Positions 33,894 to 64,000 of a stretch of 64,000 nucleotides of DNA are shown here, piece after piece. The notes beneath the pieces were generated by a model. The model was not told the DNA's origin and ran no database searches. It was given only the letters and a program-made list of their open reading frames with translations. This stretch comes from Utricularia gibba. Lineage: Eukaryota; Plantae; Magnoliophyta. The stretch covers positions 1,922,001 to 1,986,000 of the forward strand of contig CM007992.1 in assembly GCA_002189035.1 (NCBI GenBank). Direction: 5' to 3'. Within the stretch, counting starts at the first letter, position 1; each line of letters starts with the position of its first letter. Made by a program: the position numbers and the translations under genes.

Positions 33894-34088
33894 AAGAGAA
33901 TTACACAAATACAATTCAAATAGAATTACTAATGCAGAACTACACCACTTTTCAAAACTATCACAAAATTAATCACATTTTTATTTAAAACAATTTAATA
34001 TTATCATTTTTACCCCTAAAACTTTTCTATAATTAATTATGTTATCATACTTATCTTAAAATTACAAATAAAGTTACTAATAATTATC
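33894..34088 (+). repeat. Left TIR of MULE
   Basis: GAGAATTACACAAATACAATT... is the reverse complement of 48122-48314. Confidence 0.85.
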
Positions 34089-34409
34089 TGTAGAGGTTAA
34101 ACAACACTAAATTCACGATTTGGGGCAGGAGGGATTGGAATTGAGAGTTACGGATTCAAGCGATCCATTGATTTTTTCAATCTTCCATCCAATCAGATTT
34201 GGGCAAGCTTTATCACTTCCCTAACTTGCACGGGAGAGAGCAACGTCCACCCATTCAGAATCACTTCTCCAAAAGGTGAATCCATTGTAGGTCTTCCACT
34301 TGCGTTTGAATATCCCATGGCTGGATAATTGTGGGTCCCATATTTTATATTTTAGTATTTCATTTTATTCATTATTGATGAATTTTTAGAGTTCCAAGTT
34401 TGATGAATC

Positions 34410-34742
34410 ATGTCAACTTCTATTGGAGTGACATTATATTGGGGTGATAAATTAATAATAGTTGGTAATCATACTTTTTATGATCAAGTTCCAAAGGATA
34501 TTACATTTTTTTCACGTAACATTAGCTTTGAACGAATGTTAACTCAATTACGAGAAATTATATGAGCATATGATTCATTATAGAAGATCTTTGTGCAATA
34601 TACAGTGATGGATAATGAAAATCATGCAAATCTTTCTTCTATATTTTAGACTGTGATCTTATGCTCACTTATCTCTTTGATATTCAATGGAATGCAAGTG
34701 GGATTAATATGTATATTGAAGAGGTTTAATTGGCAGCTAATG

Positions 34743-34781
<39 letters not shown>

Positions 34782-36780
34782 CTATTATAATATCTTTTTT
34801 TAATTATTGATATTAATCATATGCATTCAAACATTTCCACTGCAGATGAATCAATTAGGAGTGAATCAATTCATCAAGATGATATTGCAAATGCTAAAAC
34901 AGAAAATCAGCCCTCATGGAATCCGAGAAATTTTTTTACGTCTCATATTCCTCCAATATTAGCAAATTCTATTGGCCTTCCCTACCAGGTTGACGATTGT
35001 AACATTGAGAAGGAATTATTTGACACATCTGTCTACTTTGACTCTAAAGAAGCTTTTCAAATGGCTAGTCAAAGGTATTGTATAGAATTAAGTAAAGGAG
35101 CATGTTGTGAAATATAGAACAAAAAATGTATGAGAGGTGCATTGACCACAAGCAAATGAAATGCAGCCTTGCAATTGGAGAATTAGAGGTATATTTAAAA
35201 AAAATGCAGGTTTGGAAGGTTTCTAGGTACAAAACGTTGCATAAATATTATATTGGCGGCAAATTATCTTTGGAGCACAATAATCTGAGAATGAGATTTG
35301 TAGCTTCTAAGATATTTTGTGATACTAAGAGAGATCTTGCTATCACAATTGTTGAGGTTTGACGATTCAGCAAAAATCAATTCAAGTTTGGTATTAAGGC
35401 GAGTGAAGCCTAAATTGCCATGTTTCCTTCAAGTTATGCGAGCAAAAAATCTAGGTAGTATTTTTACACCAATTAGTTATTATATTATTCATTCAATTAT
35501 TATGATATTTTATTCATCTTGAACACTAGTTTTCATGATTCTACCATGTAGGTATTATTGTTGAATACATGGTAGAATCATAGAAGCATTGTCAATCAGT
35601 TATTACAGTTGATGTGACACATTTGCATTTAGATTATCAATACAAACATATTATTGCTACTCCTCTTGATGCCAGTGGTCATATTTTGCCATTAGCTTTT
35701 GCTTTTGTAGATGATGAATCAAAATATTCATGACATTGGTTTCTTGATCTCCTTAGCACACATATTGTTCAATGACAGTGAAAGACATGCCTCATATATG
35801 ATCGAGGCTCTAGTTTAATAGGGGCTCTACCCTATATTCCCGTATTTTATGAATTTGAAGGTTGTTATCGGTTTTGTATGCAGCATGTGATATCCAACTT
35901 CATGGATAAATTCAAGAATTCTCATTTGAAAAGCATGGTATGGTCAGCTACATATGCTGAAGATATAAGCATGTTTGACATTATCATAGAAAATATTTGG
36001 AAAATAAATGAAGAAGCACATAAGTGATTGAAGAAGATCAATCCAACACAATGGATATTTGCTCATGATGGTGATGCAAGGTATGCTCTTTTATATCCTT
36101 ATTTTTAGTTATTATAATAACTTATATCAATTATATAAGTATGGATATGCAACATCAAATTGATCAAAGATTATGAATAGTGTACTCAGAGGTGCTCGTC
36201 GCCTACCTCCTACAACTATTGCACATGCTACGCTTTTGCATTGTCTATGTTACTTTCAAGAACATTGAGGAGAAATAAATCGTTTGAAAAAGGAACGACA
36301 TCTATGGGTAGAAAAAAATTCACTTGAGATGTAGTCGGTGGGATAAAAAAGCTACAAAGTATTATGTTCGTCCATGCCACACAAATACTAGGGCAACATC
36401 TATAGCTGCTCCAAGTAAGCCAGGTCATGGCCCTCGGGCTAACAATGTTAGTCTGAAAAACCAATCATGTACATGTGGCAAATGGTTAGTATAAGATCCC
36501 TTGCTCACACTCAATGCAGGTAATCATTTGGAAATTATTTTATAAATATTTCATATTTCAAATTATTTATTGTTTTATCTTTTTTCAGGTTTGCAATTAC
36601 TTAAAAGTAAATCCATGTGAATATGTGTTAAATGATTTTAGTATTGAAATATTAGAAATTACATATTCTTATCAATTTGAGTGTCTATTAGAGGAATCAT
36701 GTTGGAAGGTTCCTTTTGATCTGACTCACAATCCCTATTTCTGTTTGCAAACAAAAGTTGGTAGAAAGAGAGCCAAATGA
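34410..36780 (+). pseudogene. mudrA: MuDR-type transposase remnant
   Basis: VTLYWGD N-terminus; FDSKEAFQ..RYCI; KHCQSVITVDVTHL..ATPLDASGHILPLAFAFVDDES..WFL; FCMQHVISNF; SWIM-like SCTCGKW...PCSH. Many stops. Confidence 0.85.
34746..34780. repeat. (AT)n microsatellite
   Basis: 35-bp uninterrupted AT dinucleotide run. Confidence 0.95.
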
Positions 36781-38221
36781 TGTCCATGTGAAATGGATCG
36801 AAGGTGTCGCAAGAAGGACAAGGAAAATATTATTGATGGAATATGATATATTTTATAGATTTTGCTTTTGTTTTTGTTTTGTTGGAATATCCTTTCTTAG
36901 TTTGTATAAAAACTCATCTTATATCAATCTGCTAAACATCAGACATGCTTTTGTCGTTTGTTGTTATCTTGGGATTATGAATACTTTTTTTTATAACCAA
37001 ATCTAATAATATATCAAACTATTATTTTGTACTACGTACTTAATACATCAAAGAAATCCAATTGTGTCCAAATAATAATTCATAGTAATTAAGAATAAAA
37101 AGTAAATAACATATTAATCTATAGGGGTGTTGGCATTTGTGACCTAAAATTTTGAAGTTTTAGCATTTTTGACCCATAACAAAATGATCGGTTCGACATA
37201 GTTGACCTGAATCACTACTGGTTCTGCATATGTGACCCAAAATATTTACAAAATAATATATTTGACCTGTAAAAATTTGATGCATGACATATTTGACCCA
37301 TAAAAAATTCAGTTTTGATACTTTTAATCCATAAAATATTATAACGGGGCATATTTGACCCAACGAAAAGTTATAAAGTTAACAACAGAGTCAGTTTGAC
37401 CCAATAAGTTTACTGTTGGTCCAAGTTTAGTGTTCAGTTGGTATATTCAACCCAATAATTTGGCATATTTGACTCGTACAGTTTAATAAATTGACATTGT
37501 TGACCCTTAAGGTTCGTTAAATCTGCATATTTAACCCATAAAGTGTGACAAATTAACATAATTAAATCAATAAGTTTAGCGAATTGACATAAATAACCTA
37601 TAAAGTTTTTCAAAATTTTAAACAAATTGAATACTTTTTCAAATAAATATTGATCAATAAGTGCCTTGTAAACATGGGCACAACAGTCAATCTGAATATC
37701 CATCATGTCAACCCACTACGATTCGAACATGTGATGTCGTTGCAAAGTGAACTTAAGATTATTATAGACATTTTTATAAATCAGATTTATTTCTAAACAT
37801 ACGATAATATGACAGATGCAACAATTACAAAAAAAATTTTTATAAACATATGATATATGTTTATTAAAATATAAATCATGTAAATATGTTATTTATTAAA
37901 CCATATAATAAATATGAAAGTTTTTTAGTTTTTAATTTTATTAGCATTCGATCCTTAGTTATACTTTGGATAGAGCATATATTTTTATTTTACTCATTTT
38001 AATTAGCATTCGATCCTTGATTATGATTCGAATTGAGTGCATATTTTGTATTTTAATATTGTTATTAGCATTCGACACTTAATTATGATTCGGATCGAGC
38101 GTGTATTTCTTATTGCAATAAACCATGGTTTACGCATAAACCATGCCCGTATGGCCTTGTCGCACTGCTGGGTGTGTATACGGGCGTGGTTTACGCATAA
38201 ACCACGCCCGTATGGCCTTGT

Positions 38222-38430
38222 TGTAACGACCCGCGACCTGTACCCTAGACGCTAGGCCATTACCGACACCATCCACGCCCTGGGTTCCCCTCATCAAAGG
38301 AGATGGGCTAGGAACATGTATTTGGGTGCATGCTCCCTCGCCATGCTACTTCTCCTGGACACCTCCTATCGCATCCCCTTGGTAGCAAAGTTTAATTTAT
38401 TAAAATAAGATGACCAAGGTTCAACACAAC
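38222..38430. mobile_element. Truncated Tekay/chromovirus-like LTR end
   Basis: Begins TGTAACGACCCG, loosely similar to the 46267 LTR. The other end was not found. Confidence 0.45.
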
Positions 38431-38815
38431 CAAAGGAAAACAAGGAAACTCCCAACTATCCTGTTATGGGTGAAAATCGGTCTTCGAGATGGGGCCGATT
38501 TTTGGGTTATAAATGCGATTGGGAATACCGTGCCTTTATGCTTATGGAAGGACATATTATATATTAATCCACCTAAAGGCTATAAAACTAGGTGTTCTAA
38601 AATGTAAAAAAAATTCAAGCAGTGCAGGGTCAAGCAAGTAATGACCCTAAAATATGATAGGAACAAACAAGTTAGGCTTTCATTGGTGTCCCTAACTTCT
38701 ACTTCAATTTGACTCAGCAAATGATCTCAGCAAAAATAAGCAACCAGATCCCTAGTGTAGGTGAATCCAAGTAGAAGAGAAATGACATGATAGAAAAATC
38801 AGGTATAAATGATAT

Positions 38816-38999
38816 TTAACAGAAGAACATAGAGTTTCTAACTTTTTTCTCAAATAGAGGCATCCGAGAAACAACCGGAGCCAAAGTTGTACTGCTGGAA
38901 CCACCCACCTTGGCTAAAGGATATTTTCCAATTTTGCTCAAACTTTATCAACTGACTCAGTTGTGCTGCCGCCAAGTTAGCATAAAAAACAGGACCCAC
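38816..38999 (-). pseudogene. Captured last exon of an AGO4/6/9-clade Argonaute, frameshifted
   Basis: VGPVFYANLAAAQLSQLIKFE...SFSQGG then, in a shifted frame, MPLFEKKVRNSMFFC* (stop 38816-38818); matches the AGO4-clade C-terminus (VAPICYAHLAAAQ..F.KFE...SSHGG...NSMFFC). Confidence 0.82.
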
Positions 39000-40354
39000 T
39001 ACATAATCATATTTATCAATTGAAATGTTCAACAATAGCAACCAGGTGAATAAGAAGCAAATGCAACCGATTTTCCAGTTTTGCTCAACAGATTGTTCAG
39101 CATCACTGATGCCAAGGAAAACTATCATTCACAAACCAACCGATTTTTTGCACAAAAGTTCAACAATAGCAACCAGGTGAATAGGAAGCAAATGCAATAA
39201 TGCAAAGATTGGTATTATAAAGAAAAGGGGAATGGGTCGGCACTTCTGCTGCTTTCTTGCTTGCCTCTACATCGGGAAAATTCTTTCCGTTTGTTGGTTA
39301 TTAGCGGCATCCCGAAAACAGAATGAAGCGAAAAAATTCACAAAAGCCATACCTTAAGAGCAACTTCACGCTGATAGGATACAAATCGGTTGAGGACAGT
39401 CAGTTTTTTGAAAGGCTACCAAGCGGGGTTTTCGATGAGACAATGCCTGTCAACAGATCGATATCTGTCAAAGGATCTGACAAGAGCGGTATGGCTCAGT
39501 TTGAAGAGTAACCGAGTAACGGCAGAATGGGCGGTGATTGTCTGAAAAGCAAAATCATAGCACAAGTGCAAAAAGGTCGGTCGGGCTGACCTCCCCTATA
39601 AATAAAAGTAATCATAATGGAGGGAGGATTGGATCCGAAGCCTCCCACTTGTACTTTTTATCACTACATCCCACTAGTAAAAATCTTCTTCGGCGAGCTC
39701 CGATAGCTCCGTGGTTTTTCAATCTTACGGTAGTTTCCAAGTAAAAATCCTCGCCTACCCTCCCCCTCTTATTCCCATTAACCAAACCGTACAAAATCAT
39801 GAAACACATAGGAAGGTACGGAATTTCCCGATCGCACCTTTCACCCGAAAATCCTTCACAAACATCGATTTTCACCCGTAACACACGCCTTTCTGTTGTG
39901 TGGGAATCACTTCTCCCAATCTCTCATTAGTTTGCCTTCACCCGTAAGAGGAGAAGAGGCTCATCCCCAATTCAATTTAGGGTCAAATATCAAAAATAAT
40001 TTTTTTTAATATTTTAATAATTAAATATTTTTTTAATAAAATATTATTATTATTGAACCGGGTTCAATTATGTAGGTTAAATATACCAAACCGGTAAACT
40101 ATTTGGATCAAATATGTCAAAATTGAAATTTTATCAAGTTAAATTTATTATTATTAAATGGGTGTATTCTACAGTAACAATTCATCAAGTTAAATCCATA
40201 GCTCAAATACATCAATTCATCAAACTTATGGGTCAAATATGCCCATTCACGAAACTTTATGGATCCGTTATGCCTCGTTATGAAAATTTCTAAATTCGTT
40301 ATATTCTAAATCTATAATTTTTAGGTCATATATATAATTGTCTCGTTCTAAAAG

Positions 40355-41230
40355 ATCAATCATTTTTTCTCTATCCACTGCAATATAACATTACCAACCA
40401 AATTTACAAATCGCATCAATGATCACTGAGGTCAAAACACCATCTGGATGCCCATAACAGAGAACTACAGAAATCTGTCGCACAAGCATAATGAAAAAAA
40501 AAGAAAATTAGGATCTTGACTCACCAAAGCGAATAGTAATCTACGTATTCCCGAAATCTAAAGAAAACAATATAAAAACGGCTTACTGGGAAGCCAGAGC
40601 GCTACAGAAACAACAAAGCAACCCAAATGCACGATGCATCGGACAAATCCCTACGCCCACGACTATCAAAGAACCTAAAATAATGAAGTGATTCGCTTCC
40701 CCCCCCCCCCCCCCCCCCTCCCAGTGGAGAATGAGTCGCTATGGCCGGCGGTAGTGTGGGCCCGCTACCTCGGAAAGTCAAGAGAGAGGACACCGAGATC
40801 CGCTACAGAGGAATTTCCCCGTCGCAATCCCCTCGGTATCCTATCGACCCTACGGAGCTTATTCCTCCTGTTTTGATTTAGGGGAAATAGGCAATTTGTG
40901 AAGATTTGATAGGAATTTTGAAAACTATTACAAGAAATACGTTCTCGCGGCAGCAGCACAAGAACTTCAGGAACTCAAAGACGCAGGACAAGAACAGGGG
41001 ATCAAAGTTCAGGAACACTAGAGACAACCAAATCCAGGGCTCAGACCAACCCCAAAGATTGTGTTCATCCATGGGAGGAAGGTAAGTAGAGAGGAGTAAA
41101 AGCCCACAACGATGCTTACCAGAAACCATTCAATTTCAAGAACTGCTCCTCCTAGAGCAAATTTATTTGCAACTGTTTCAAAAAGCGTACAAATTGCTGT
41201 TGCCATCCAAGAAAAGAACACACACTAAGA
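40355..41230 (-). other. Putative 5' leader (with 147-bp GT-AG intron) of the kinase gene, displaced from its CDS
   Basis: Donor G|GTGAGT at 40524 and acceptor TTGCAG at 40378. The exon runs into GTTCTAAAAG, which also precedes the kinase leader at 45021-45030. Confidence 0.55.
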
Positions 41231-41376
41231 ACGAAACACATGCCTGAGAGCATGTTTTGTATCTTATTCACATGACACAATACTTGTATAATACAAATCT
41301 ATGAACACAAAGGAGGATCAGCCGCGCCGGCAAGATGAGGGAGGATTGGATTCACTGTGGGAGGTGGTGAAATGGT

Positions 41377-41685
41377 CTAATAAGTAGGTTGATAGTAATA
41401 AAAATAGCGCGGAAGAAATCCCTGCTGCCATTGCTCCCGGACTTCGTCTATCTTGATGCTCGCCTCTGGTTCCTTAGCCGAGCCGAAGGAGACGATGTCG
41501 ACGGCGCAAAGCTTCCGCAACTGATCCACAACCACCACTGGGTCCACATCCCCGGTGATCGTCAGCTTCTTGGCGCTGGCATCAACAGCGATGGACTCCA
41601 CACCCGAGATACTGGAGACCTTCTTCATCCCTTTCCGCTTCATTTTCTCGTTTGAGTAGTCGAATTTCAGAACAATCTTCTTCAT
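41377..41685 (-). CDS. HMA-domain protein, HIPP39/RATX1-like (102 aa, no CxxC, no CaaX)
   Basis: MKKIVLK...KRKGMKKVSSISGVESIAVD..KKLTITGDVDPVVVVDQLRK...DIVSFGSAKEP matches the HIPP39-type HMA; uninterrupted ATG-TAG ORF. Confidence 0.75.
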   Translation of the reverse strand: MKKIVLKFDYSNEKMKRKGMKKVSSISGVESIAVDASAKKLTITGDVDPVVVVDQLRKLCAVDIVSFGSAKEPEASIKIDEVREQWQQGFLPRYFYYYQPTY

Positions 41686-41736
41686 TTCGTTAGGATCGGA
41701 ATTTTGAATCGGTGCCTGGAAAATGCTTTCCCGACG

Positions 41737-41900
41737 CTAATTTATAGCACAAAGTCGACTGAAGAAAGCGCACTACTGAATAGAGTCGTCTGCAAGTTTC
41801 CGCTACGCGTCTTGTTGAAGACCGTCAACCAGATAACATTCCCATGTACGCTTCGTGGAAGTAAGTCAAGCAGCCTCTCAGAAACTTCTTGGAGCCCACG
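41737..41900 (-). promoter_or_regulatory. Putative proximal promoter of HMA gene
   Basis: CTATAAAT ~55 nt upstream of the ATG; TTGACT (W-box, 41867-41872), TTGACG (~41823), CGCGT (~41805), AACGTGG (~41897). Confidence 0.45.
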
Positions 41901-42369
41901 TTTTAAATTTTTTTAATTATTTGAATTTCCTTAATTGAGTATATTCGAAATTATGTATTATGATCCATATTAATCATCACGATTTAAAAGATATTACATC
42001 AAGTATATTCGAAAGTATGTATTATGTTTTTATAGGTTGATTTTTTTATTTTAGTTTAGATTTAATATATTTACACAAAAAATAAATTAAGAACTCAATG
42101 CAAAGAAGAAGAATCACATGGTTCTATGGATAAGATTAAACGACAGCGTTTTACGAGCCCAATTTATTAGTGTTAAGATGGGCTTTATAATTATGGGTGT
42201 CATATCTTGATAAGGAATGGTTCCAGCCACACGTTCCCATAAGATGAGACCAAATCCATACACATCTACGTGCGCTCGTAGTGCTTGTGGTGCTTCCGGT
42301 CGATCATTTCCGGGGCCATCCAGCGGTAAGTACCAGGATCATCGGAAACAGTATCACAAGAGTTCTCCT

Positions 42370-43790
42370 TAGAGATGTTCATGGGTTGGTTCTATGCCAA
42401 CCCAGAACCGACCCAACTATAAAGACAAAGACCCGAAACCAACCCAGACCCGATTAAGAACCGATAGACCCAGAACCATGGTTCTTTATCGGTTATGGGT
42501 CGGTTCTAGGTCCTTACCGATTCCGGCTTTTACTAAAAACATTGAATTTAAAAGCTTTCAAACAATATAAAAATAATGTATTAAAAGTCACAGAAAACTG
42601 ACAAACACTAGGAAAAATGTTCATACAAATTAAAAGGACTACGTTTAGTTTTGATACAAAAGTAGAACTATGTCGCACACTTGAACACACATGTTTCTAA
42701 AAATCACATTGAAAACAAACGTTTACTGTAATTAATTTTAATACTCCCAGAATCGCTAATGTGGGTGACTAGAACAAGAAATGCAAAATTAGGCACCCGT
42801 ACCCAAAATTTAGGAATTGCGCAATTTTTGAAAGTATTCTTAATTTTCAGAAATATAAAAATTTTTGGGTGCATTAATTGGAATATAAAAATTTGAAAAT
42901 GAAATGATTTTATATATCCTAAATACTACAAAATAATTTTAATAAATAAAAAATATTCCTCTGTCTTTTAGATCATTTTTCAGACACCCATATTGCCTCG
43001 TATGGATGTTTAGAAAGAGTGATTTTCAGGCACCCACGTCTCTTATATGGGTGTTTGGGAAGGAGTATTTGAGACAGTTTTTCAGACACTCTCTTCCATC
43101 ATGTGGGTGCCTCGAGAGGGTGTTTGGAATGAGAGTTGGACGACATCTACAAAATAATGCATTGTGTGGGTGTCTGAGAAAAGTGATTTCCAGGCATCCA
43201 CATCTCTTATATGGGTGTCTGAGAAGGAGTATTTAAGATAGTTTTCTATACACCCACTTCCCTTATGTGAGTGCCTCGGGAGGATATTTGCGAGTCTATA
43301 ACAAAATTCCAAGCAACATGAAAAATCAAAAGACTACTCAAATCCACAAACTAGAGATGTTCAAAAGACCCACCCAGACCCAGAATCGATCGGAACTGAC
43401 CCAGTTTTTCGGGTCGGTTCCACCCAAATCTACATGGCTATCTTCGTCGCTGCAAAGCCCCCACTTATTTCTACAAATATGGGCCCCATTGTCATTTAAT
43501 TATTTAAGTAATAATAATAATAATAAGTGTTAATAAATAATATGATAAAAACATGCTGAGTAAATCAATAATTATTTACAACTCATGATCCAATATTCTT
43601 AGTGAAAAAATACTATTGGTTCTAAGTCGGGTCTGGATATTTTCCCGTAGACCCAAAATCGATCCAAAACCGACCGGTTCTTCATTTAATACCCAAAACC
43701 AACGCAGACCCAGAACCAGTCAGAACTGACCCGAAAAACTGGGTCGGTTCCGATCGGTTCTGGATCGGGTGGGTCTTTTGAACATCTCTA
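42370..43790. mobile_element. Non-autonomous hAT element inserted in kinase exon (1421 bp)
   Basis: TIRs TAGAGATGTTCA / TGAACATCTCTA; perfect 8-bp TSD GTTCTCCT (42362-42369, 43791-43798); ACCCAGAACC/GGGTCGGTT subterminal repeats; removal restores CEEN-SCD. Confidence 0.93.
42952..43289. repeat. MITE-like insert with two ~110-bp internal direct repeats
   Basis: Units at ~43015 and ~43180 (AGTGATTT.CAGGCA.CCAC.TCTCTTATATGGGTGT...); weak inverted ends AATATTCCTC/GAGGATATT; CAGACACCC motifs. Confidence 0.45.
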
Positions 43791-45030
43791 GTTCTCCTCG
43801 CAAGCAATACCAAAGTCTGCAACTTTGAGATGGAAATCCTCTGTTATGAGGATGTTTGAGTGGATATATTCCATCCCTCTGGCAATGTCCAGAGCCATGG
43901 TTAAAAGCTTCTGAAGAGGGAGGGGTTTTTCCTCAACCTTGGTCAAGTACGATCTCAGAGACCCTGAGGGCAGATACTCTGTTATGATGCCGAGGACTGG
44001 AGGTTTTTGGCATGCCGCCACAAACTGCGGTCATGGGTGCTTATCAGATGGCTCAATCAGTGAACTGGAGTGAGAAAGAAGCGAATGAACCAGTTACCTT
44101 CAACACATTTTGATGGCGGAGACGTGACAAGATGGTGACCTCCCTAGTAAATCGCTTCTCAAAGCGAGAACGCATTGATCCATTTTCATCGTCATCATCT
44201 GGGAATCTGATGATCTTTACTGCAACAGGTTCGCCTTTGTATTTCCCATGGTAGAGATGACTATGTGCGCCATGAGTAAATCTTAGTCCCAGAAATAACT
44301 GTGAAAGATCAACTTCAAACTGTTTGTCCAAAGTTGCTACTGCGCTCACCCTCCCACCACTTTGATCAAAATACTTGCTCCAGCCTGAAGACTCTTTCTG
44401 ACTCTTTGATCTGTCGTTCGGTTTCAGGAAAGGGGAATGAGAAAGAGACCTTGAATTTCTTGAAAACTTCACCTCCCGCGTGGAAGACCTGGTTTCACTG
44501 AAAGACTTGGTCACCCTTCTCTGAATCTTCCCTTCTGGGGCTTGGGGTCGAGAACCTTTTCTGGCTTGAGCGAGCTTCACTGAATGCGTCTGGAAGTGTT
44601 AATTCTGGGAGAGGCGACACTGCCCTCATCTTGTTATTTGCAGGGTTATTGTGAATCTCATCGACATTTGGCAGTGATCTCTGATATAGAAGAGCTACTT
44701 CCCTCCGTGTTTTTGTCACCTGAAGAGGTGAAGAAGAGGACAGCATTCAAGGAGCCATCCGATGGCAAAACGTGTGAGAGAACTTGGTTCTCCTGATCCA
44801 AGAAGCAGCCTCTTCCTCCATGGAAGATCAGTTCCAAAAGCCACTCTGACAAACAAGTAAGTTGATCACAATATTCTCCTATATGCACCAGACTCAAATC
44901 GCCTGATGTTTTCCAATCCCATCACCAAATTATAAGGAAAGATGAATCAACCCCTCCTCCATCAAACTTCAAGAAAGACCAGATGATAAAGCACCATCTG
45001 GATCCCTGCATACACTTGGAGTTCTAAAAG

Positions 45031-48000
45031 GGGGTTTTGGCATTTGTGACCTAAAATTTTGAAATTTTAGCATTTTTATCCATAACAGAATGACCGATTC
45101 GACATATTTGACATGAAACAGTACCAGTTTCGTATATATGACCCAAAATATTTAAAAAATGATATATTTGACCTGTAAAAAATTTGTTGCATAACATATT
45201 TGACCCATAAAAAATTCAGTTTTGATACTTTTGATCCATAAAATATTATAACGGGGTATATTTGATCTAACGAAAAGTTATAAAAGTTTACAACGGAGTT
45301 TGTTTGACCCAATAAGTTTACTGTTAATCCCGCGTTTAGTGTTCAGTTGGTATATTCAACCCAATAATTTGGCATATTGACCCGTACAGTTTAATAAATT
45401 GACATTGTTGACCATTAAGGTTTGTTAAATCCGCATATTTAACCCATAAAGTGTGACAAATTAACATAATTAACCCAATAAGTTTATCGAATTGACATAA
45501 ATAACCTATAAAGTTTTTCAAAATTTTAAACAAATTGAATACTTTTTCAAATAAATATTGATCAATAAGTGCCCTGTAGACATGGGCACAATAGTCAATC
45601 CAAATATCCATCATGTCAACCCACTACAATTCGAACATGTGATGTCGTTGCAAAGTGAATTTAAGATTATTATCAACATTTTTATAAATCAGATTTATTT
45701 CTAAACATACGATAACATGACAGATGCAACAATTACAAAAAAAATATTTTTATAAACATATGATATATGTTTATTAAAATATAAATAATATAAATATGTT
45801 ATTTATTAAACCATATAATAAATATGAAAGTTTTTTAGTTTTTAATTTTATTAGCATTCAATCCTTAATTATATTTTGGATGGAGCATATATTTTTATTT
45901 TAATCATTTTAATTAGCATTCGATCCTTGATTATGATTCGAATTGAGTGCATATTTTGTATTTTAATATTGTTATTAGCATTCGACACTTAGTTATGATT
46001 CGGATCGAGCGTGTATTTCTTATTGCAATATTTTTATTAGTATTCGATCCTTAAATATGATTCGGATCGAGCATATATTTTTTATTTTAATATTTTTATT
46101 AATATTCGATCCTTATGTATACTTTGGATCGATTGAATATTCATTTATTTTAAATCTTATTTAGCTTCGACCCTTAGAAGCAATTTAGATGGTGTATACA
46201 TGACAATGCCACATGGACGTGGTTTACGCATAAACCACGCCCGTGTGGCGTTGTCGTGCTGCTGGGTGTAACGATCCTCCACGACACCCTAGGCGAGAGG
46301 ACCTTTACCACGCGCACTTGTGGTAGGGTTGCACAGCACACTCTGCCTAAGGGGCTTCCCGTGCTGCGCGTCCAACGCGTGCTCAGTACCACCTCACCCG
46401 TATGCTCCTTGCCTTGCTCGCTCGCACACGGGTCATGGGCTGAGGGAGCTATAGTAATGCAAAAGAACCTGACTTTATTCATGACGATAGAATACTAGTC
46501 CAAGAGGAGGAGAGAAATAGTGCAAGAATCATAGGAAAAACATGCAGGAAATGAAGTTGCGCTCTAGCCCGCCTTACTGCTCCCGACTTCACTACTTGGC
46601 TGCTCCACCCTCGCCATCCGCCCCTCCTATCCCGTCCAATGCCTCATCCCCGGAAGTACCTACATGACCAGTAAGGGGTTAGTCCTATGCAACATGAGTC
46701 CTATGCGCAATGACGAAGAATTTGAGAAAACAGTGCTTGGTGCGATCACGGTGCAGTCTCGAGGTTCCCCCTTTTTATCCTCGACGGTCGATGCCCCTTG
46801 ATTGAACCCTGAGGTTCCTCTTTGGTTGGATTTTCAGCCCTGTATGCCCGAAGGCTGATATGCCCGAAGGCCCTTGAGTGGCATGAGTCCCACGCAAGCG
46901 CGTTGCCTTTGGGTTGGGGTGGCCATCTCCCCTTCCCTCCCCTTGATTGCATCGATCTCTATGACCCTTGACTCATGTTCTATGCCTCTGTTACATTCAG
47001 TACCATGACCTATGCCCTTGACACATTGAACACCCAAGTTAGTCATTAAACCGTATGGAAATCTCCTTACCGGATCGAAGCGTCTCCTTCCCCCACTCTT
47101 ATGGACGTTCGTCTAGCCTTTTGTTGTCTTGAGCCCTTCAGCCTTGCGCCTTCGTGGTGTGGAGAGTGGGGGAGGAAGGAGAGCTTCGATCCTTCCCCTT
47201 ATATAGAGGCTAACCTCCCCCCTTGTATGGGTGTTTCCCCTATCTTCGCAGATTTGGTCCCTTGGATTGAGGGACTTTCCCCATTGACCATAACTTCCTT
47301 ATTTGATCCCCCTAGATTTCGGCAACTTCCCTTGACTGAATCCTTGTCATATCCTGCTCAATCTTGCCATATTCCGTCTACTGGTCCCATCCGCTCATGT
47401 TGTGACCAAGTCTCGTGCGCAATCTTGCACGCTAGTTTCCTTGTGATCTCTCGACCCAGGGCTTCCATGTGGACCTAAGTCAAGTAAGGATGAGGGATAG
47501 CATTGGTACCTTGTTTTTGATATCGTTACAAACTCCCCCACTTAAAGAAGTTTCGTCCCCAAAACTTCATCTTCCATGAATGTCAGGTACCCTGCTTTCA
47601 TGGCTGTTTCCTTCTCCCACGTAGATTCTTCTATTCCACGCCCCATCCATTGCACCTTTACCCACCATGTCGGTCTTCGATTCACCATGGTGATCTTGCA
47701 GTCCAGTACCCTTAGTGGCTTGTTCTGGTACGTTAGGTTCTCTCTGAGCACGACGTCATCTGCCCTGATTTCCATATCTGGCGAGGGAACATGTCTCCTG
47801 AGTTGTGAGATGTGGAACAAATATTCCAAATCGGTAAACTATTTGGGTCAAATATTCCAAAATTGAAATTTTATCAGGTTAAATTTATTATTATTAAATG
47901 GGTGTGTTCTATAGTAACAAAAATCCGTAGGTCAAATACGTCAATTCATCAAACTTATGGGTCAAATATACCCATTCACGAAACATTATGGGTCCATTAT

Positions 48001-48073
48001 GCCCTTTTATGAAAATTTATAGGTCCCTTATATTCTAAATCCATAATTTTTAGGTCATATATATAATTGTCTC
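45031..48073 (+). mobile_element. Non-autonomous MULE-like element E, copy B
   Basis: Same termini as copy A; flanks GTTCTAAAAG (left) and TTAATGTATA (right); centre replaced by a Tekay fragment. Confidence 0.82.
46267..47820 (-). mobile_element. Tekay-like chromovirus: 3' LTR (46267-47530), PPT and chromodomain end of integrase, truncated
   Basis: TGTAACG...CGTTACA LTR; AAGTGGGGGAGTT PPT; FHISQLRRHV...LTYQNKPLRVLD...VKVQW...EESTWEKE. Confidence 0.85.
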
Positions 48074-48121
48074 TTAATGTATATAGTTATAAAGATGATA
48101 AAATAAAGTAAAGATATAAAG

Positions 48122-48316
48122 GATGATTATTAGTTACTTTATTTGTAATTTTCAGATAAGTATGGTAATATAAATAATTATAGAAAAATTTTGGGAGTAA
48201 AAATGATAATATTAAATTATTTTAAATAAAGACCTGATTAGTTTTGTGATAGTTTTGAAAAGTAGTGTAGTTTTGAATTGGTAATTCAATTTTAATTGTA
48301 TTTGTGTAATTCTCTA
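48122..48316 (-). repeat. Right TIR of MULE
   Basis: Reverse complement of 33894-34088 with roughly 22 mismatches. Confidence 0.85.
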
Positions 48317-53602: not shown

Positions 53603-56600
53603 TGTTGTTGCAAGAAAAATAGAGTCTTGGGAAGTAACAAAAAGGTAATGCTTATGAGATCACCTTGGATGAAAAACGACTCATGAACAATAATAATGAC
53701 CGAAAACCTAATGACACGCATTCCTAGTAGGGTTTATATATACCCAATACCTAGGTTACCCAACAGTGGGCCACAATCATTGAAAACACACAAAAAGCCC
53801 AACAACTCAAATCCAACACTTCCATGCTCGAACCCAATACCTTTTTTATCTGAAATATGACATTATGACACATGTTTAGTTCTTCCAATCACCTTCAAGG
53901 TTTGGATTGAGGCTGATCTCCAACATTCCCCCCAGACCGAGATCTCCCAATTTGAGAAAGTCTTCCATAGTCATGAGATTCATGTTCTTCCTTGCTAGCT
54001 CAAAGTGAACTCTGTTCAAACCTTTGGTGAGCCCATCAGCAAGCTGATTCCCACTCTCAACATATTGCACTTTAATCTTCTTCTCCTTGATGTAATTCCT
54101 TATGACATGATACCTGATTCTTATGTGTTTGGCTTTGCTGAAGTTCGTCGGATCCTTGGCAATGGAGATTGCAGCTCGATTATCCATAAGCAGATGTGTA
54201 GCTTCCTGTTGTATGAATCCAAGTTCGTTTAGCATCTGCCTGAACCAAACACAATAGTTCGAAGCATGTGCTGCTGAGATGTATTCTGCTTCAGCTGTTG
54301 ATTGTGCTACCACTTTTTGTTTCTTAGAAAACCAGACTACAGGGCACTTATTTAAGAAGAAGAGTGCACCAGATGTACTCTTGCTATCTTCAGCCATACC
54401 ATAATCACTATCTGAGTAGGCTCTAAGTTTCAAGACTGGTTTTTCACCTTCATAGGGATAGAACAATCCGAAATCAGTAGATGATTTTATGTACCTGAAA
54501 GCTCTTTTCACAGCTGCCATGTGAGTTGTTGTTGGTTTGTTGAGGAAGCGAGATAAGACGTTTACACAAAAACACAAGTCAGGCCTTGTATGCTGGAGAT
54601 AAATGAGGCTTCCAATCATACTTCTATAAGTAGTGGCATCCACATTCTTTCCCTGATTGTTCTCTCCAATCACTTGTTTGTAATCCAAAGGCGTTTTTGA
54701 AGGATTGACATCTTTGAACCCAAACCTTTCAAGAAGTTCATTACAGTACTTTTTCTGAGATATGAATGTTCCAACACCTTCAAGCTGATGAATTTCCATG
54801 CCTAGATAGTAAGACATCATTCCAAGGTCAGTCATTTTGAATTCATTTTTGAGCAGAGCTTTGAATTCCTCAATCTTCCTTTCATTACCTGAGGTAATCA
54901 TAAGATCATCCACATATAAGCTAATAAATAAACGATCATCTTCTTTTCCTTTAACATATAGTGAGTAATCACTATATGTTTTTCTGAAACCAATACCCTG
55001 AAGAAAGTTATCCATGCGTTCATTCCATGCTCTAGGAGCTTGCTTCAACCCATAGAGAGATTTCTTTAGCTTCAATACCTTGTCTTCATGACCTGACACT
55101 TCGAAGCCCTTTGGTTGTTCAACAAAAACAACCTCCTCCAACACACCATTCAAGAACGCAGTCTTAACATCCATGTGATGCACTTTCCATCCATGAGCAG
55201 CTGAAATGGCAAGAAGTACTTTAATCGTGTCAAATCTTGCTACTGGTGCAAAAACCTCATGAAAATTTATTCCTTTGATCTGACTATATCCCTTGGCTAC
55301 TAATCTAGCCTTATATTTGTTGATAGAACCATCTGCATTCATCTTGGTTTTGAATAACCACTTGAGGCCAATAGGTTTGAAACCTCTATCCTTGGGTTTA
55401 TCAACTAACTCCCATGTTTCATTTTCAAGTATAGAGTTCATTTCTTCCTTCATGGCCTCTCTCCATTTCGGATTTTGTACAGCCACTTCAAATGATGTTG
55501 GATCTCCTGTCAATAATGCAGCCAAAATATCAGCTACAGCATCTTGGACATCATCATTCAACTTGGAGAAACTTATTGTAGGAGCCTTGTTTCTTTTGCT
55601 TCGTCTAATGTCAGTAACATGACTATCTTCATTATCTATAGAATCTCTGATGTTTTTGCGTTTCCTCCTTTGCCAATCACGATCAGATGGGTAATAATCT
55701 TCATCATCAGTATCAGGTTCCTCTCCATCAGATTCATCTGTTGATGAGTCTTCTGCATTCGTGCCTTGCTCCTCTTCTGGGATTTCGAAATTCCCATCTG
55801 AATGTAGATCATTGGCCTTCTCCTCCTCTGGAGCTGGAAAATTCTCATCTGAATGCTGATCATTTACTTGATTTGAATCTTCATGAACGAGTTCTGAAGT
55901 TTCTTGGTTTGTTGAATTCCTGGAAGAGAAGTTTTGAGACATGTGTGTCCAGAGGTCTCCTTTCACATGGGTGCTATGCCTTCCATCACTTTTATGAGCT
56001 TCTACATCATTCAGAGAAATGCAATCATCAATTAAAGTATACCTTGCACCTTCATCAAAAGTGACATCATGGCTGAAAATAAATTTCTTCTGTTGAGGTA
56101 AATAAACTTTATATCCCTTGGTAGTGTTGCTATAACCAACAAATACACCAGATGCAGATTTCTTATCAAGTTTTCCTCGTTTTTGGTCTGGTACATGAGT
56201 AAAACACAGACTACCAAAGATTCTGAGATGATCAACCTTTTTAATATAACCATGCCATTTTTCATGCGCGGTTTTTCCACTAATCGCCCTTGAGGGAAGC
56301 AAGTTCAATAGATATACAGATGTAGATACCGCTTCAGCCCAGAAATTTACAGGAAGATCTTTCTCAAACAATAGACATCTTGACATATCAAGGATTGTTC
56401 TGTTTCTCCTTTCACATACACCATTCTGTTGTGGAGAATATGGTACGGTGAATTGATGCATGATTCCCTCATTTTCACAGAACATTCTCATGCTATTATT
56501 GTAGAATTCGCCTCCATTGTCTGATCTAATCATCTTCAAAGAGCATCCACTCTGATTCTCAATCATCACTTTGAATTTTCGAAAGATATGATGAACTTCT

Positions 56601-58906
56601 GACTTGCTTTTAAGAAAGTAAACCCAACAATAACGTGAATAATCATCAATGAATGTAACAAAATATCTACTCCCCCCTAATGAACATTCCTTAAATGGTC
56701 CACAAACATCTGTATGCACAAGCTCTAATTTCTCCTTTGCTACTGAATCACTGGAATAAAATGGCTTTCTACATTGCTTACCTTGATGGCACACTTCACA
56801 TATGGCATTAGCAAACTTGATGTCTTTCAATTCCAGTACTTCCTTATTCTTCTGCAATATTTTCAAATTGTTGAAGCTATAGTGCCCAAAACGTTTGTGC
56901 CAAAGGCTGCTTTGATCCTGAAGTGAGAAAATACAACTTTTATGATCACTGACCATGATTTGGTAGAGGTTGTAGGTGGTCAACACAGCATGGAATTCAA
57001 TCTTCGTTTTTGGATCAGCAACCTTAACTTTAGTGGTTATACCACCAGCATCCTTCATCAGCTCAATGTCAAAACCTTGCCTGCTCAATTGGCCAAAGCT
57101 CAACAGGTTCTGTTTGAGGTTTGGTGAATAATAAACATCATCAACTTGAACAATTCCTTCTTTTAGCAAGAGTAAAATGCTTCCTTTGCCCACAATGCCA
57201 ATATTTTCACCAGTGCACGTGCTTACCTCCTTCCCAATCCTTTCAAGCTTGAGAAATGACCTTGTATCACAACATACATAATAGGAGGCACCAGAGTCCA
57301 AGTACCAACCTTTAGCATCTGAGGCTACTGTCATTAGAGCACACTCATACTCAAAAGGATTTTCAAAAGATATTTCTGGCTCATCTTCAAAGTAGGTAAA
57401 GGATGCATGTGATTTCTCTTCCCTGGAAGTAGTCTTCTTGTTATGTTCAACTTTTATTGGATTGGACATTCCACATACCTTATTAAGATGGCCTCTTTGA
57501 TTGCATTTCGTGCACAAAGCACCAGGCTTCCACCAACAAAACTCACTCCTGTGATTCTGTTTGTTGCAATGCTTGCAAGCATTTGTGCTTAAAGTCCAAC
57601 AATCTTCACTCTTATGGTTGGATTTGTCACAATGCCTGCACTTCTGATTGCCCATCGTTGATGTTTGGATTGACGTTGGTGATTGTTTGATGGCTGTTGA
57701 CTTGACATCTTTGACATTGTTAATTGCACCTGAGGTTACATTCATATTCTGCATTTTGGTGAGGAGAGCAGCTTCACCATAAGTTTTCTCAACTTCATAA
57801 CCATCTCTTAGTTCCAATCTCTTTTCTGTAGATTGCAACTCAATCATGAACTCTCTAAATGTTGGCTCTGGTGTAACAGGATATTCAGGATACAGCTGAT
57901 GGAGCTTTCCTTCAATAATGTCAAAGATTTTTCTTTCTGTCTCAAGTGCACATAACTTTGGCTCGAATCTTGCAGGTAGGCTCATGATTGCCTTGCTAAT
58001 CACCTTTTGATCCTCAAGTTTTTCCCCCAATCCTCGAATCTCCTTCACAAGCTTCGCAGTACGTTCATAATAGACTTGTATGGTTTCATTGTCTAACATT
58101 TTGTTCCTCTCAAAGTCCTCCAGCTTGTTTTTGCATAATATCTCTCTGAGTTTGGCATCGCCTTCATAATGGGATTTGAGAGTATCCCATATTTCTTTTG
58201 CTGATTGACACTCTGCAATATCATCAAATAGATGTTCAGAGATGGCTTGATACAAGGCATCCATTGCTTCATCTTTTCTCTGTTGAAGATACTCAGCTTC
58301 CTCTTGCTGTTCTGATGTGGATTTGCTTGTTATTGTAATAGCCGGAATCTCCCTTTCAACAACATCCCAAATCTTTCTGACCCGAAGGTAGCTGCGCATC
58401 TTTTTGACCCAGCTTCCATACTCTGAACCATCAAATATTGGAGGTCCTCTACCAGATGCCATCATAGCCACCGCTTGACAAGCTTTGGGTTGATACTTGG
58501 TAGTCCACCAGGTAAAAAACGCTGAACGGTATATAAAATACTGAAACGAACACAGGTTTGAGAACCTTACTGCTCTGATACCATGTTATTGCAAGAAAAA
58601 TAGAGTCTTGGGAAGTAACAAAAAGGTAATGCTTATGAGATCACCTTGGATGAAAAACGACTCATGAACAATAATAATGACCGAAAACCTAATGACACGC
58701 ATTCCTAGTAGGGTTTATATATACCCAATACCTAGGTTACCCAACAGTGGACCACAATCATTGAAAACACACAAAAAGCCCAACAACTCAAATCCAACAC
58801 TTCCATGCTCGAACCCAATACCTTTTTTATCTGAAATATGACATTATGACACATGTTTAGTTCTTCCAATCACCTTCAAGGTTTGGATTGAGGCTGATCT
58901 CCAACA
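53603..58906 (-). mobile_element. Young full-length Ty1/copia element, copy 1 (5304 bp)
   Basis: 323-bp LTRs 58584-58906 and 53603-53925 (2 differences seen); PBS TGGTATCAGAGCA (58571-58583); PPT GGGGGGAA; intact ORF. Confidence 0.97.
53876..58465 (-). CDS. gag-pol: Intact copia gag-pol polyprotein (~1529 aa from first ATG)
   Basis: Single ORF: gag, CCHC knuckles, WYLDSGAS protease, WHKRFGH pre-integrase, HTDVCGP/SDNGGEF integrase, MDVKTAFLNG/LYVDD RT, ADGLTKGL RNase H. Confidence 0.95.
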   Translation of the reverse strand: MMASGRGPPIFDGSEYGSWVKKMRSYLRVRKIWDVVEREIPAITITSKSTSEQQEEAEYLQQRKDEAMDALYQAISEHLFDDIAECQSAKEIWDTLKSHYEGDAKLREILCKNKLEDFERNKMLDNETIQVYYERTAKLVKEIRGLGEKLEDQKVISKAIMSLPARFEPKLCALETERKIFDIIEGKLHQLYPEYPVTPEPTFREFMIELQSTEKRLELRDGYEVEKTYGEAALLTKMQNMNVTSGAINNVKDVKSTAIKQSPTSIQTSTMGNQKCRHCDKSNHKSEDCWTLSTNACKHCNKQNHRSEFCWWKPGALCTKCNQRGHLNKVCGMSNPIKVEHNKKTTSREEKSHASFTYFEDEPEISFENPFEYECALMTVASDAKGWYLDSGASYYVCCDTRSFLKLERIGKEVSTCTGENIGIVGKGSILLLLKEGIVQVDDVYYSPNLKQNLLSFGQLSRQGFDIELMKDAGGITTKVKVADPKTKIEFHAVLTTYNLYQIMVSDHKSCIFSLQDQSSLWHKRFGHYSFNNLKILQKNKEVLELKDIKFANAICEVCHQGKQCRKPFYSSDSVAKEKLELVHTDVCGPFKECSLGGSRYFVTFIDDYSRYCWVYFLKSKSEVHHIFRKFKVMIENQSGCSLKMIRSDNGGEFYNNSMRMFCENEGIMHQFTVPYSPQQNGVCERRNRTILDMSRCLLFEKDLPVNFWAEAVSTSVYLLNLLPSRAISGKTAHEKWHGYIKKVDHLRIFGSLCFTHVPDQKRGKLDKKSASGVFVGYSNTTKGYKVYLPQQKKFIFSHDVTFDEGARYTLIDDCISLNDVEAHKSDGRHSTHVKGDLWTHMSQNFSSRNSTNQETSELVHEDSNQVNDQHSDENFPAPEEEKANDLHSDGNFEIPEEEQGTNAEDSSTDESDGEEPDTDDEDYYPSDRDWQRRKRKNIRDSIDNEDSHVTDIRRSKRNKAPTISFSKLNDDVQDAVADILAALLTGDPTSFEVAVQNPKWREAMKEEMNSILENETWELVDKPKDRGFKPIGLKWLFKTKMNADGSINKYKARLVAKGYSQIKGINFHEVFAPVARFDTIKVLLAISAAHGWKVHHMDVKTAFLNGVLEEVVFVEQPKGFEVSGHEDKVLKLKKSLYGLKQAPRAWNERMDNFLQGIGFRKTYSDYSLYVKGKEDDRLFISLYVDDLMITSGNERKIEEFKALLKNEFKMTDLGMMSYYLGMEIHQLEGVGTFISQKKYCNELLERFGFKDVNPSKTPLDYKQVIGENNQGKNVDATTYRSMIGSLIYLQHTRPDLCFCVNVLSRFLNKPTTTHMAAVKRAFRYIKSSTDFGLFYPYEGEKPVLKLRAYSDSDYGMAEDSKSTSGALFFLNKCPVVWFSKKQKVVAQSTAEAEYISAAHASNYCVWFRQMLNELGFIQQEATHLLMDNRAAISIAKDPTNFSKAKHIRIRYHVIRNYIKEKKIKVQYVESGNQLADGLTKGLNRVHFELARKNMNLMTMEDFLKLGDLGLGGMLEISLNPNLEGDWKN

Positions 58907-59685
58907 GTTTTTCCACCCTATTCTTCCTTGTGTGATGGTCCAGCAGGGCTCGTCCTTCTGGTCTTAGTGCCTCAACTCTGTTTAGAGTCCCTAAAATTCT
59001 TTTTTCAAAACCTAAATTTGGTGCCCTTGTTGGTCGGTTTCCAAACAAGCGTTTCCTTTCAAGGTGTATAAAGTGCTCAATGTTCATTGTTATGTGCTAT
59101 GTGTATACATTACGAAATGGAGAGGAGTGTGGCTCGAGTGTGGACCCACACTCCTAGCAACATGGTAAACTTGCATCCTTTTGCCACCAATCGTGCCTTC
59201 AGTCGATTGAGAGATCCGTTGGGGTTAAGATTTGCTTTGTATACCCACTTGCATCCAATTATATGTTGTGCAGTGTTGCGAGGTACAAGAGACCATGTTT
59301 TGTTGCGATGTAGGGCGTCCAACTCCTCAAGCATAGCTGCTTTCCATCCTGGGTGATTGAGCGCCTCTTTGATCCCTTTTGGCTCCAAGGGGATTGTACT
59401 GTAATGCTCCATGTAAAGTGTATACTTGGGGTTTGGTTTGATTATTCCTCGTTGTGATCGAGTGGTCATGGCATGTGAACGCTGTGGAGAAGACACATTA
59501 GTTACAACAGGAGCATCAGGAAATTCTGGTACCTCAAGGTTGTCGTACGGTTCTTGGCGACCCGCTATTGTTCCTTGTGTGGCATGCTGTGGTGAGGGCA
59601 GCGGTTCTAGAACAAGTGATGAAGGAGATGGAACGGGGTGAATGTGCTATGAGAAAGGGGTACTAGTCTCTCTGATTTCAGTTTC

Positions 59686-60502: not shown

Positions 60503-60521
60503 CCTGAAACATTGGGAAGTT

Positions 60522-63500: not shown

Positions 63501-64000
63501 CTTAAATAAGTGCCCTGTAGTCTGGTTTTCGAAGAAACAAAAAGTGGTAGCACAATCAACAGCTGAAGCAGAATACATCTCAGCAGCACATGCTTCGAAC
63601 TATTGTGTTTGGTTCAGGCAGATGCTAAACGAACTTGGATTCATACAACAGGAAGCTACACATCTGCTTATGGATAATCGAGCTGCAATCTCCATTGCCA
63701 AGGATCCGACGAACTTCAGCAAAGCCAAACACATAAGAATCAGGTATCATGTCATAAGTAATTACATCAAGGAGAAGAAGATTAAAGTGCAATATGTTGA
63801 GAGTGGGAATCAGCTTGCTGATGGGCTCACCAAAGGTTTGAACAGAGTTCACTTTGAGCTAGCAAGGAAGAACATGAATCTCATGATTATGGAAGACTTT
63901 CTCAAATTGGGAGATCTCGGTCTGGGAAGGAATGTTGGAGATCAGCCTCAATCCAAACCTTGAAGGTGATTGGAAGAACTAAACATGTGTCATAATGTCA
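60522..64000 (+). mobile_element. Young Ty1/copia element, copy 2, internally deleted; 3' LTR runs off window
   Basis: 5' LTR 60522-60844; PBS 60845-60857; 3' LTR starts 63933; ~99% identical to copy 1 in opposite orientation. Confidence 0.96.
60963..63963 (+). pseudogene. gag-pol: Disrupted gag-pol of copy 2
   Basis: 1-bp loss in the G run near 62751 shifts the frame in integrase; a 1570-bp deletion at ~63503 removes RT; the RNase H end is retained. Confidence 0.92.

Follow-up and report, generated by a model that had tools for sequence, protein, structure and literature searches.

Mutator-like elements (MULEs) make a target-site duplication (TSD) of 9-11 bp and usually end in terminal inverted repeats (TIRs) of 100 bp or more with a Mu-like terminus, and their non-autonomous members are moved by a MuDR-type transposase with the same termini. 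How Pack-MULEs, reportedly described by Jiang et al. in 2004, acquire their host fragments is unsettled, and gap repair with template switching, replication-fork switching and alternative transposition have all been proposed. Here we describe a locus in a 64,000-nt stretch of Utricularia gibba contig CM007992.1 (hereafter the window, to whose positions all coordinates refer), in which two elements, E1 and E2, probably non-autonomous MULEs of one family, enclose a cargo with predicted host gene fragments, and in which the 10-bp flanks of each element match those of the other element and not its own. The locus is like Pack-MULEs in that non-autonomous, apparently Mutator-like elements are found together with host gene fragments, whereas captured DNA in a Pack-MULE lies within one TIR pair and the cargo described here lies between two complete elements and retains a TSD pair.

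Inter-element homologous recombination is well known for long terminal repeat (LTR) retrotransposons without matching TSDs, and the present locus resembles its products in that non-matching flanks pair reciprocally with those of the other family member and homology is confined to the common parts. Unlike the outcome of a simple inter-element exchange, however, both reciprocal products, E1 and E2, are found only 4.7 kb apart around a closed segment, so that a circular or copied partner is required. The flank pattern is also that of the bacterial replicative cointegrate, in which a Shapiro intermediate is resolved as donor-element-target-element-donor and every copy therefore keeps a donor flank on one side and gains a new target duplication on the other, but the copies in a cointegrate are identical, whereas E1 and E2 differ in their whole interiors, and a cointegrate model would demand a 3.2-kb circle as target. 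To our knowledge, replicative strand transfer is not known for plant MULEs.

Composite Insertions of the maize Ac/fAc system arise by reversed-ends transposition with re-replication, which leaves a second copy of a few to 20 kb of host DNA elsewhere in the genome (Zhang, Zuo, Wang and Peterson 2014, PMC4270019). As in these insertions, the outer transposon termini of the present locus are flanked by a TSD, here a 10-bp pair matching at 9/10, and the interior would consist of elements and donor-flanking DNA with one internal junction. On the other hand, the Ac/fAc elements belong to the hAT superfamily and have an 8-bp TSD, whereas the present elements appear Mutator-like with a TSD of 10 bp; the inner flanks here form a perfect TSD pair, pointing to a single donor target site; and the event is old and fixed, with a mechanism that is a proposal, while the maize insertions were observed de novo. 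A further parallel comes from the Mutator-like VANDAL21 in the soma of Arabidopsis met1, where closely spaced copies were proposed to undergo hybrid-end reactions with a circular spacer as by-product, although, unlike the present locus, these events were somatic, head-to-head and not resolved to TSDs (PMC12312487).

The flanks of E1 and E2

E1 and E2 lie in direct orientation, and both have sharp edges in a repeat scan as well as by direct reading (Table 1). The outer 10-mers, TTAATCTATA and TTAATGTATA, match at nine of ten positions and the two inner copies of GTTCTAAAAG at all ten, while the remaining four pairings, among them the own flanks of E1 and the own flanks of E2, all match at 3/10. 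These results agree with an earlier note on this DNA, which had described the order TSD1-E-TSD2-cargo-TSD2-E-TSD1 and had stated that neither element has a TSD pair of its own. Among random 10-mer pairs drawn from the window, the probability of a match of at least 9/10 was 8.6e-5 and that of 10/10 was 1.6e-5, giving a joint chance of about 1e-9 for both matches at fixed registers, and no further occurrence of any flank 10-mer was found within the window. A chance origin of the flank matches was ruled out by these random-pair statistics together with the uniqueness of the 10-mers in the window.

Three other simple explanations were rejected. Two independent ordinary insertions are ruled out by the mismatch between the own flanks of either element. 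E1 and E2 cannot be the LTRs of a retrotransposon, since their ends are not TG...CA, the interiors of such "LTRs" differ and the duplication is 10 bp long. Nor is the cargo a transposon with a 10-bp TSD that landed between tandem elements, as it has no terminal repeats.

Since the two 10-bp pairs abut the element termini exactly, both are best read as transposase-type target duplications. The outer duplication, A, would then stem from a site in the surrounding host unit, H, and the inner duplication, B, from a site whose two sides now appear to form the ends of the cargo. With c2 and c1 as the two parts of the cargo, the order of the composite is A-E1-B-c2~c1-B-E2-A, formally a cointegrate, and every model must have A at the two outer element ends (left in E1, right in E2) and B at the two inner ones (right in E1, left in E2). 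That a donor insertion was moved elsewhere together with both of its flanks, as the earlier note suggested, is implied by this exchanged arrangement of the TSDs.

Table 1. Features of the composite locus and of the unit that surrounds it (positions in the window).
Feature	Position	Strand	Description
H left inverted-repeat arm	33895-34088	+	194 bp; blastn 89.7% reverse match to 48122-48315
Outer flank A	37114-37123	+	TTAATCTATA; left of E1; 9/10 vs 48074-48083
E1	37124-40344	+	Left arm 37124-38264, private interior 38265-40069, right arm 40070-40344
Inner flank B	40345-40354	+	GTTCTAAAAG; right of E1
c2	40355-42195	-	Putative kinase 5' leader, spacer, HIPP-like open reading frame and its upstream region
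c1	42196-45020	-	Predicted Raf-like/STY-type kinase pseudogene fragment
hAT-like non-autonomous element	42370-43790		1421 bp; in kinase exon; TIR TAGAGATGTTCA...
Inner flank B	45021-45030	+	GTTCTAAAAG; left of E2
E2	45031-48073	+	Left arm 45031-46267, right arm about 47815-48073
Outer flank A'	48074-48083	+	TTAATGTATA; right of E2
H right inverted-repeat arm	48122-48315	-	48 bp past E2 right end

Termini, shared arms and unrelated interiors

The comparison of E1 and E2 by blastn and global alignment revealed homology only in the left ~1.0-1.14 kb (93.6% identity) and in the right ~270 bp (87-90%), whereas the interiors, 1.8 kb in E1 and 1.5 kb in E2, align at background level. E1 and E2 are therefore not the two direct copies of one element that the earlier note had seen, and the locus calls for a minimum of two different family members or for an additional replacement event. 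The divergence of the arms is uneven (chi-square p=4e-4), amounting to 10.4% in the first 300 bp, 4.0% at 300-800 and 10.4% in the right arm. The common left arm contains a tandem array of a 62-bp unit, with 3.1 copies in E1 (37922-38114) and 5.6 in E2 (45831-46176); a local palindromic duplication (38126-38236) was observed downstream of this array in E1.

E2 has as its interior a reverse-oriented gypsy/chromovirus 3' end, comprising an LTR (46268-47529, TGTAACG...CGTTACA), a polypurine tract and an open reading frame (ORF) for an integrase chromodomain (47542-47829), of which the Pfam Chromo match is weak (E=0.0095). E1 keeps about 45 bp of the gypsy LTR start (38222-38264) at the same arm junction as E2 and then continues into unrelated DNA, and this common junction points to a common ancestor of the family. 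On the minus strand of the E1 interior (~38850-39128), motif reading identified an ORF with a motif resembling the C-terminus of AGO4-type Argonaute, a reading that was confirmed neither by Pfam nor by a PDB sequence search, both of which returned no matches.

The termini of the elements were set in two independent ways, by the limits of the E1/E2 homology and by a short, imperfect TIR. In both elements the first base of the TIR core TGACCTAAAA is nt 17 counted from the left end, and at the right end the reverse complement of the core stops 16 nt short of the terminus; the core is thus in the same register at both ends, with about 21/40 matches over the TIR. Subterminal TTTGACC repeats have opposite orientations at the left and the right end, and the right terminus reads GAGACAATT... 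as its reverse complement. A long TIR was not found in E1 or E2, and neither a transposase partner nor another copy of the family was present inside the window. Both elements are without long ORFs, lack a transposase and have interiors made of captured fragments, as is the case for non-autonomous elements. Since the 10-bp duplication and the GAGACAATT-type right terminus fit what is known of the superfamily, these features point to E1 and E2 being non-autonomous Mutator-like (Pack-MULE-type) elements of one family.

The cargo and a later insertion

The earlier note had placed a kinase fragment in the cargo, and this was borne out by a PK_Tyr_Ser-Thr match (E=3e-13); a plausible leader lies at the opposite end of the cargo. 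On the minus strand, a 199-bp leader runs from 45020 to an ATG at 44821, the frame of which meets a stop after 24 codons, with other frames used later. There are further frameshifts and one 64-bp intron, part of the catalytic loop is absent, and kinase coding extends to subdomain IX near 42200, so that the gene is represented by a pseudogene fragment. The closest protein matches of the kinase ORF are at 56-70%.

The other part of the cargo, c2, begins with the putative 5' leader of the kinase, in which a GT...AG intron (about 40770-40355 region) ends 23 bp before GTTCTAAAAG. A spacer of ~0.5 kb separates this leader from a HIPP-like ORF (41377-41685, minus strand), and AT-rich DNA is found below ~42195. 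The HIPP-like ORF, which belongs to a metal-binding type of gene, is intact and intronless, with 102 codons and an HMA match in Pfam (E=2.4e-6), and has its closest protein match, at 64%, in a HIPP39-like protein of Olea. The closest relatives (64%) contain introns and extend further at the C-terminus, where a prenylation motif region is located, and the copy in the cargo may be a truncated or retro-type copy. No sequence from the same species was among the matches in protein searches with the HIPP and kinase ORFs.

We placed the join between c2 and c1, termed J, near 42195, where the kinase coding similarity ends. If the cargo is read as a circle, the order HIPP-leader-GTTCTAAAAG-kinase coding sequence would be a plausible and sensible native arrangement, with J as the one novel join. 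A direct match of ~17/20 (CACCATCTGGAT...) occurs near both ends of the cargo (40437-40458 and 44988-45009), the two sites being ~125 bp apart in the predicted native order; it may be due to chance or to a small tandem duplication that was native to the target region.

The kinase exon is interrupted by the hAT-like element, whose insertion the earlier note had likewise regarded as later than the composite. The element is flanked by a perfect 8-bp TSD, GTTCTCCT, at 42362-42369 and 43791-43798, and the cargo without it measures ~3.24 kb. In addition, the element contains an extra, inverted inner copy of its own terminal ~70 bp (43349-43420 versus 43723-43793, 93%), which suggests an internal rearrangement or a nested copy.

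The host unit and its neighbourhood

The entire composite is enclosed in a 14.4-kb unit, H (33895-48315), which is delimited by inverted-repeat arms and has termini that differ from those of E1 and E2. The designation of H as a MULE in the earlier note is unproven, as the ORFs of H gave no Pfam match, transposase included, and a matching TSD for H was not seen. An ORF with a SWIM-like CxC motif lies inside H at 36324-36494. Further along the window, an intact copia element (53603-58915) has a 1531-aa ORF and 332-bp LTRs, and an inverted copy of it (60513-64000), 99% identical, has a 1.6-kb internal deletion and extends past the window; the three visible 5-bp flanks of this copia pair are AACTT, CCCTA and AACAT, which in a quick check did not pair as TSDs exchanged by an inversion would.

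Origin of the composite

We tentatively favour, with a confidence that falls just short of even, that two different family members were joined by a homology-driven event in their common arms, which is formally the same as the integration of a circle. One family member, Ea, would have inserted normally at site A inside H, making its own 10-bp TSD, and another, Eb, would likewise have gone into the 5' leader of a kinase gene adjoining a HIPP gene (site B), with a 10-bp TSD of its own. A single homology-driven event in the ~1.1-kb left arm or the 270-bp right arm would then have placed Eb into Ea, bringing along ~1.8 kb of the right flank and ~1.4 kb of the left flank of Eb. This could have happened by a crossover with an extrachromosomal circle bearing Eb and its flanks, by gap repair of the transposon or by break-induced replication, in which synthesis changed template to the ectopic copy, overran it on both sides and finished with end joining at J (~42195), or by an equivalent template-switching replication. 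In the product A-E1-B-c2~c1-B-E2-A, E1 and E2 would be reciprocal hybrids.

An insertion at A, an insertion at B and one joining make up the most economical history for two family members. The flanks pair across the elements, A with A' and B with B, and the elements share 1.1 kb (94%) and 270 bp (~90%) of homology, as is to be expected of inter-element recombination. If the arms recombined in reverse, a simple A-E-A insertion would be left behind and a simple B-E-B insertion would be released on a circle, and hence only one rare event beyond ordinary transposition is needed. Recombination between two members is favoured since E1 and E2 have only the arms in common, and unrelated interiors are unexpected from a single copied element; moreover, the uneven arm divergence of 4-10% fits divergence that already existed between family members. 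While the arrangement of the flanks, the sharp termini, the two TSD pairs and the difference between E1 and E2 are observed, we infer that there were two ordinary insertions, that c1-B-c2 is contiguous at the native locus, where J lies and how the joining took place.

Several points weigh against this recombination between family members. The two starting insertions, A-E-A and B-E-B, are hypothetical, and in plants both the integration of circles and run-off repair on two sides are rare events with little documentation. A crossover point marked by a tract of raised identity was not found in the left arm, where the longest identical run is 89 bp. HIPP-kinase adjacency was found neither at Populus HIPP loci nor at one kinase locus that was fetched, and since the two genes are not neighbours there, the cargo could be a mosaic instead of a single native segment, although the lack of adjacency elsewhere neither supports nor excludes a native neighbourhood in U. 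gibba.

The same crossed TSDs could also have been produced entirely by transposase, in an alternative transposition that used hybrid ends of two linked elements, which we consider unlikely but a serious competitor. The native HIPP-kinase segment would have been flanked by E1 and E2 in direct orientation and moved to A as a macrotransposon via its outer ends (left of E1, right of E2); the facing inner ends (right of E1, left of E2) would then have been excised in a reversed-ends reaction that circularised the spacer, and would have re-inserted into the spacer circle at B, thereby permuting the spacer and making the inner TSD. In a variant of this model, an Ac/fAc-style composite insertion with re-replication, E2 and E1 of the donor would have been adjacent within one B duplication. 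Both 10-bp pairs are explained directly as transposase duplications, which makes recombination unnecessary, and two different elements are compatible with the model. In maize, Ac/fAc is documented to yield spacer circles as well as composite insertions flanked by TSDs (PMC4270019), and alternative transposition with a detected spacer circle was proposed for VANDAL21 of Arabidopsis, itself Mutator-like (PMC12312487). However, the model requires two rare events, a macrotransposition and the re-insertion into its own circle, or else a donor that was already composite; a former neighbourhood of E1 and E2 at a native locus is hypothetical, and a footprint at J is not recognisable without the native sequence.

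The absence of common interiors bears on the idea that a single element at B was copied to A together with both of its flanks, either as a replicative cointegrate formed with a circle or in a sister-chromatid transposition followed by re-replication and end joining, and that the initially identical copies diverged later in their interiors through independent deletions of a larger ancestor or gene conversion from family members. This idea, which includes the replicative and the sister-chromatid/reversed-end routes put forward in the earlier note, fits the geometry exactly and has the maize composite insertions as a precedent (PMC4270019), and the arm/gypsy LTR junction that the elements have in common (~45 bp in E1) makes a common ancestor carrying the gypsy sequence plausible. 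Nevertheless, nothing beyond these 45 bp is common to the interiors, so that either two complementary deletions meeting at one point or conversion of a whole interior would be needed, a coincidence that the common junction does not remove. Furthermore, duplicates of the same age should be uniformly diverged, whereas the arms differ by 4% in one part and by 10% in others, and the outermost parts diverge most, the opposite of what internal conversion would leave. Because the interiors are unrelated and the arm divergence is uneven, models with one element are disfavoured, and we regard them as improbable. A wrong join within the arms that connected separate loci in the assembly is less probable still. 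The arms are 1-kb repeats, which could invite such an error, but a difference of 4-10% between them is easily separated by modern assemblers, and a switch inside the arms cannot make the c2~c1 continuity or the inner B/B pair, so that E-B-cargo-B-E would still be required; contigs of several independent runs also contain 20-50% of the words sampled from 39900-45899, a result that concerns presence only.

Significance

The locus belongs with the known kinds of transposon-mediated rearrangement, here in the Mutator superfamily and with unusually clean scars. The structure works like a cointegrate or a composite insertion, although its two elements are not the identical copies of a replicative cointegrate, and it appears to preserve the trace of a rare event in which two transposon copies became joined and host DNA was brought to a new location. 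Two complete family members bracket both flanks of one target site and both TSD pairs are preserved, which makes the locus a rare fossil that lets the succession of events be followed. Should the native locus turn out not to fit, what we describe would be a well-defined recombinant transposon pair of modest interest.

A more far-reaching reading, which is possible but which we hold to be rather doubtful as a whole, is that the locus is a germline-fixed, natural composite (cointegrate-like) insertion of the Mutator family, the first natural composite insertion outside Ac/Ds, by which both flanks of the donor MULE, with an open HIPP gene that has a promoter and with a kinase gene's 5' half, were moved into another transposon, and that it represents a caught intermediate of flank capture on the way to a Pack-MULE. 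In this reading the cargo now lies between intact left and right MULE ends, and loss of the inner ends would give a classical multi-fragment Pack-MULE; confirmation from the donor locus would make the present structure such an intermediate. The locus would then extend composite-insertion and cointegrate-type rearrangements from the hAT elements of maize to the Mutator superfamily in a natural genome.

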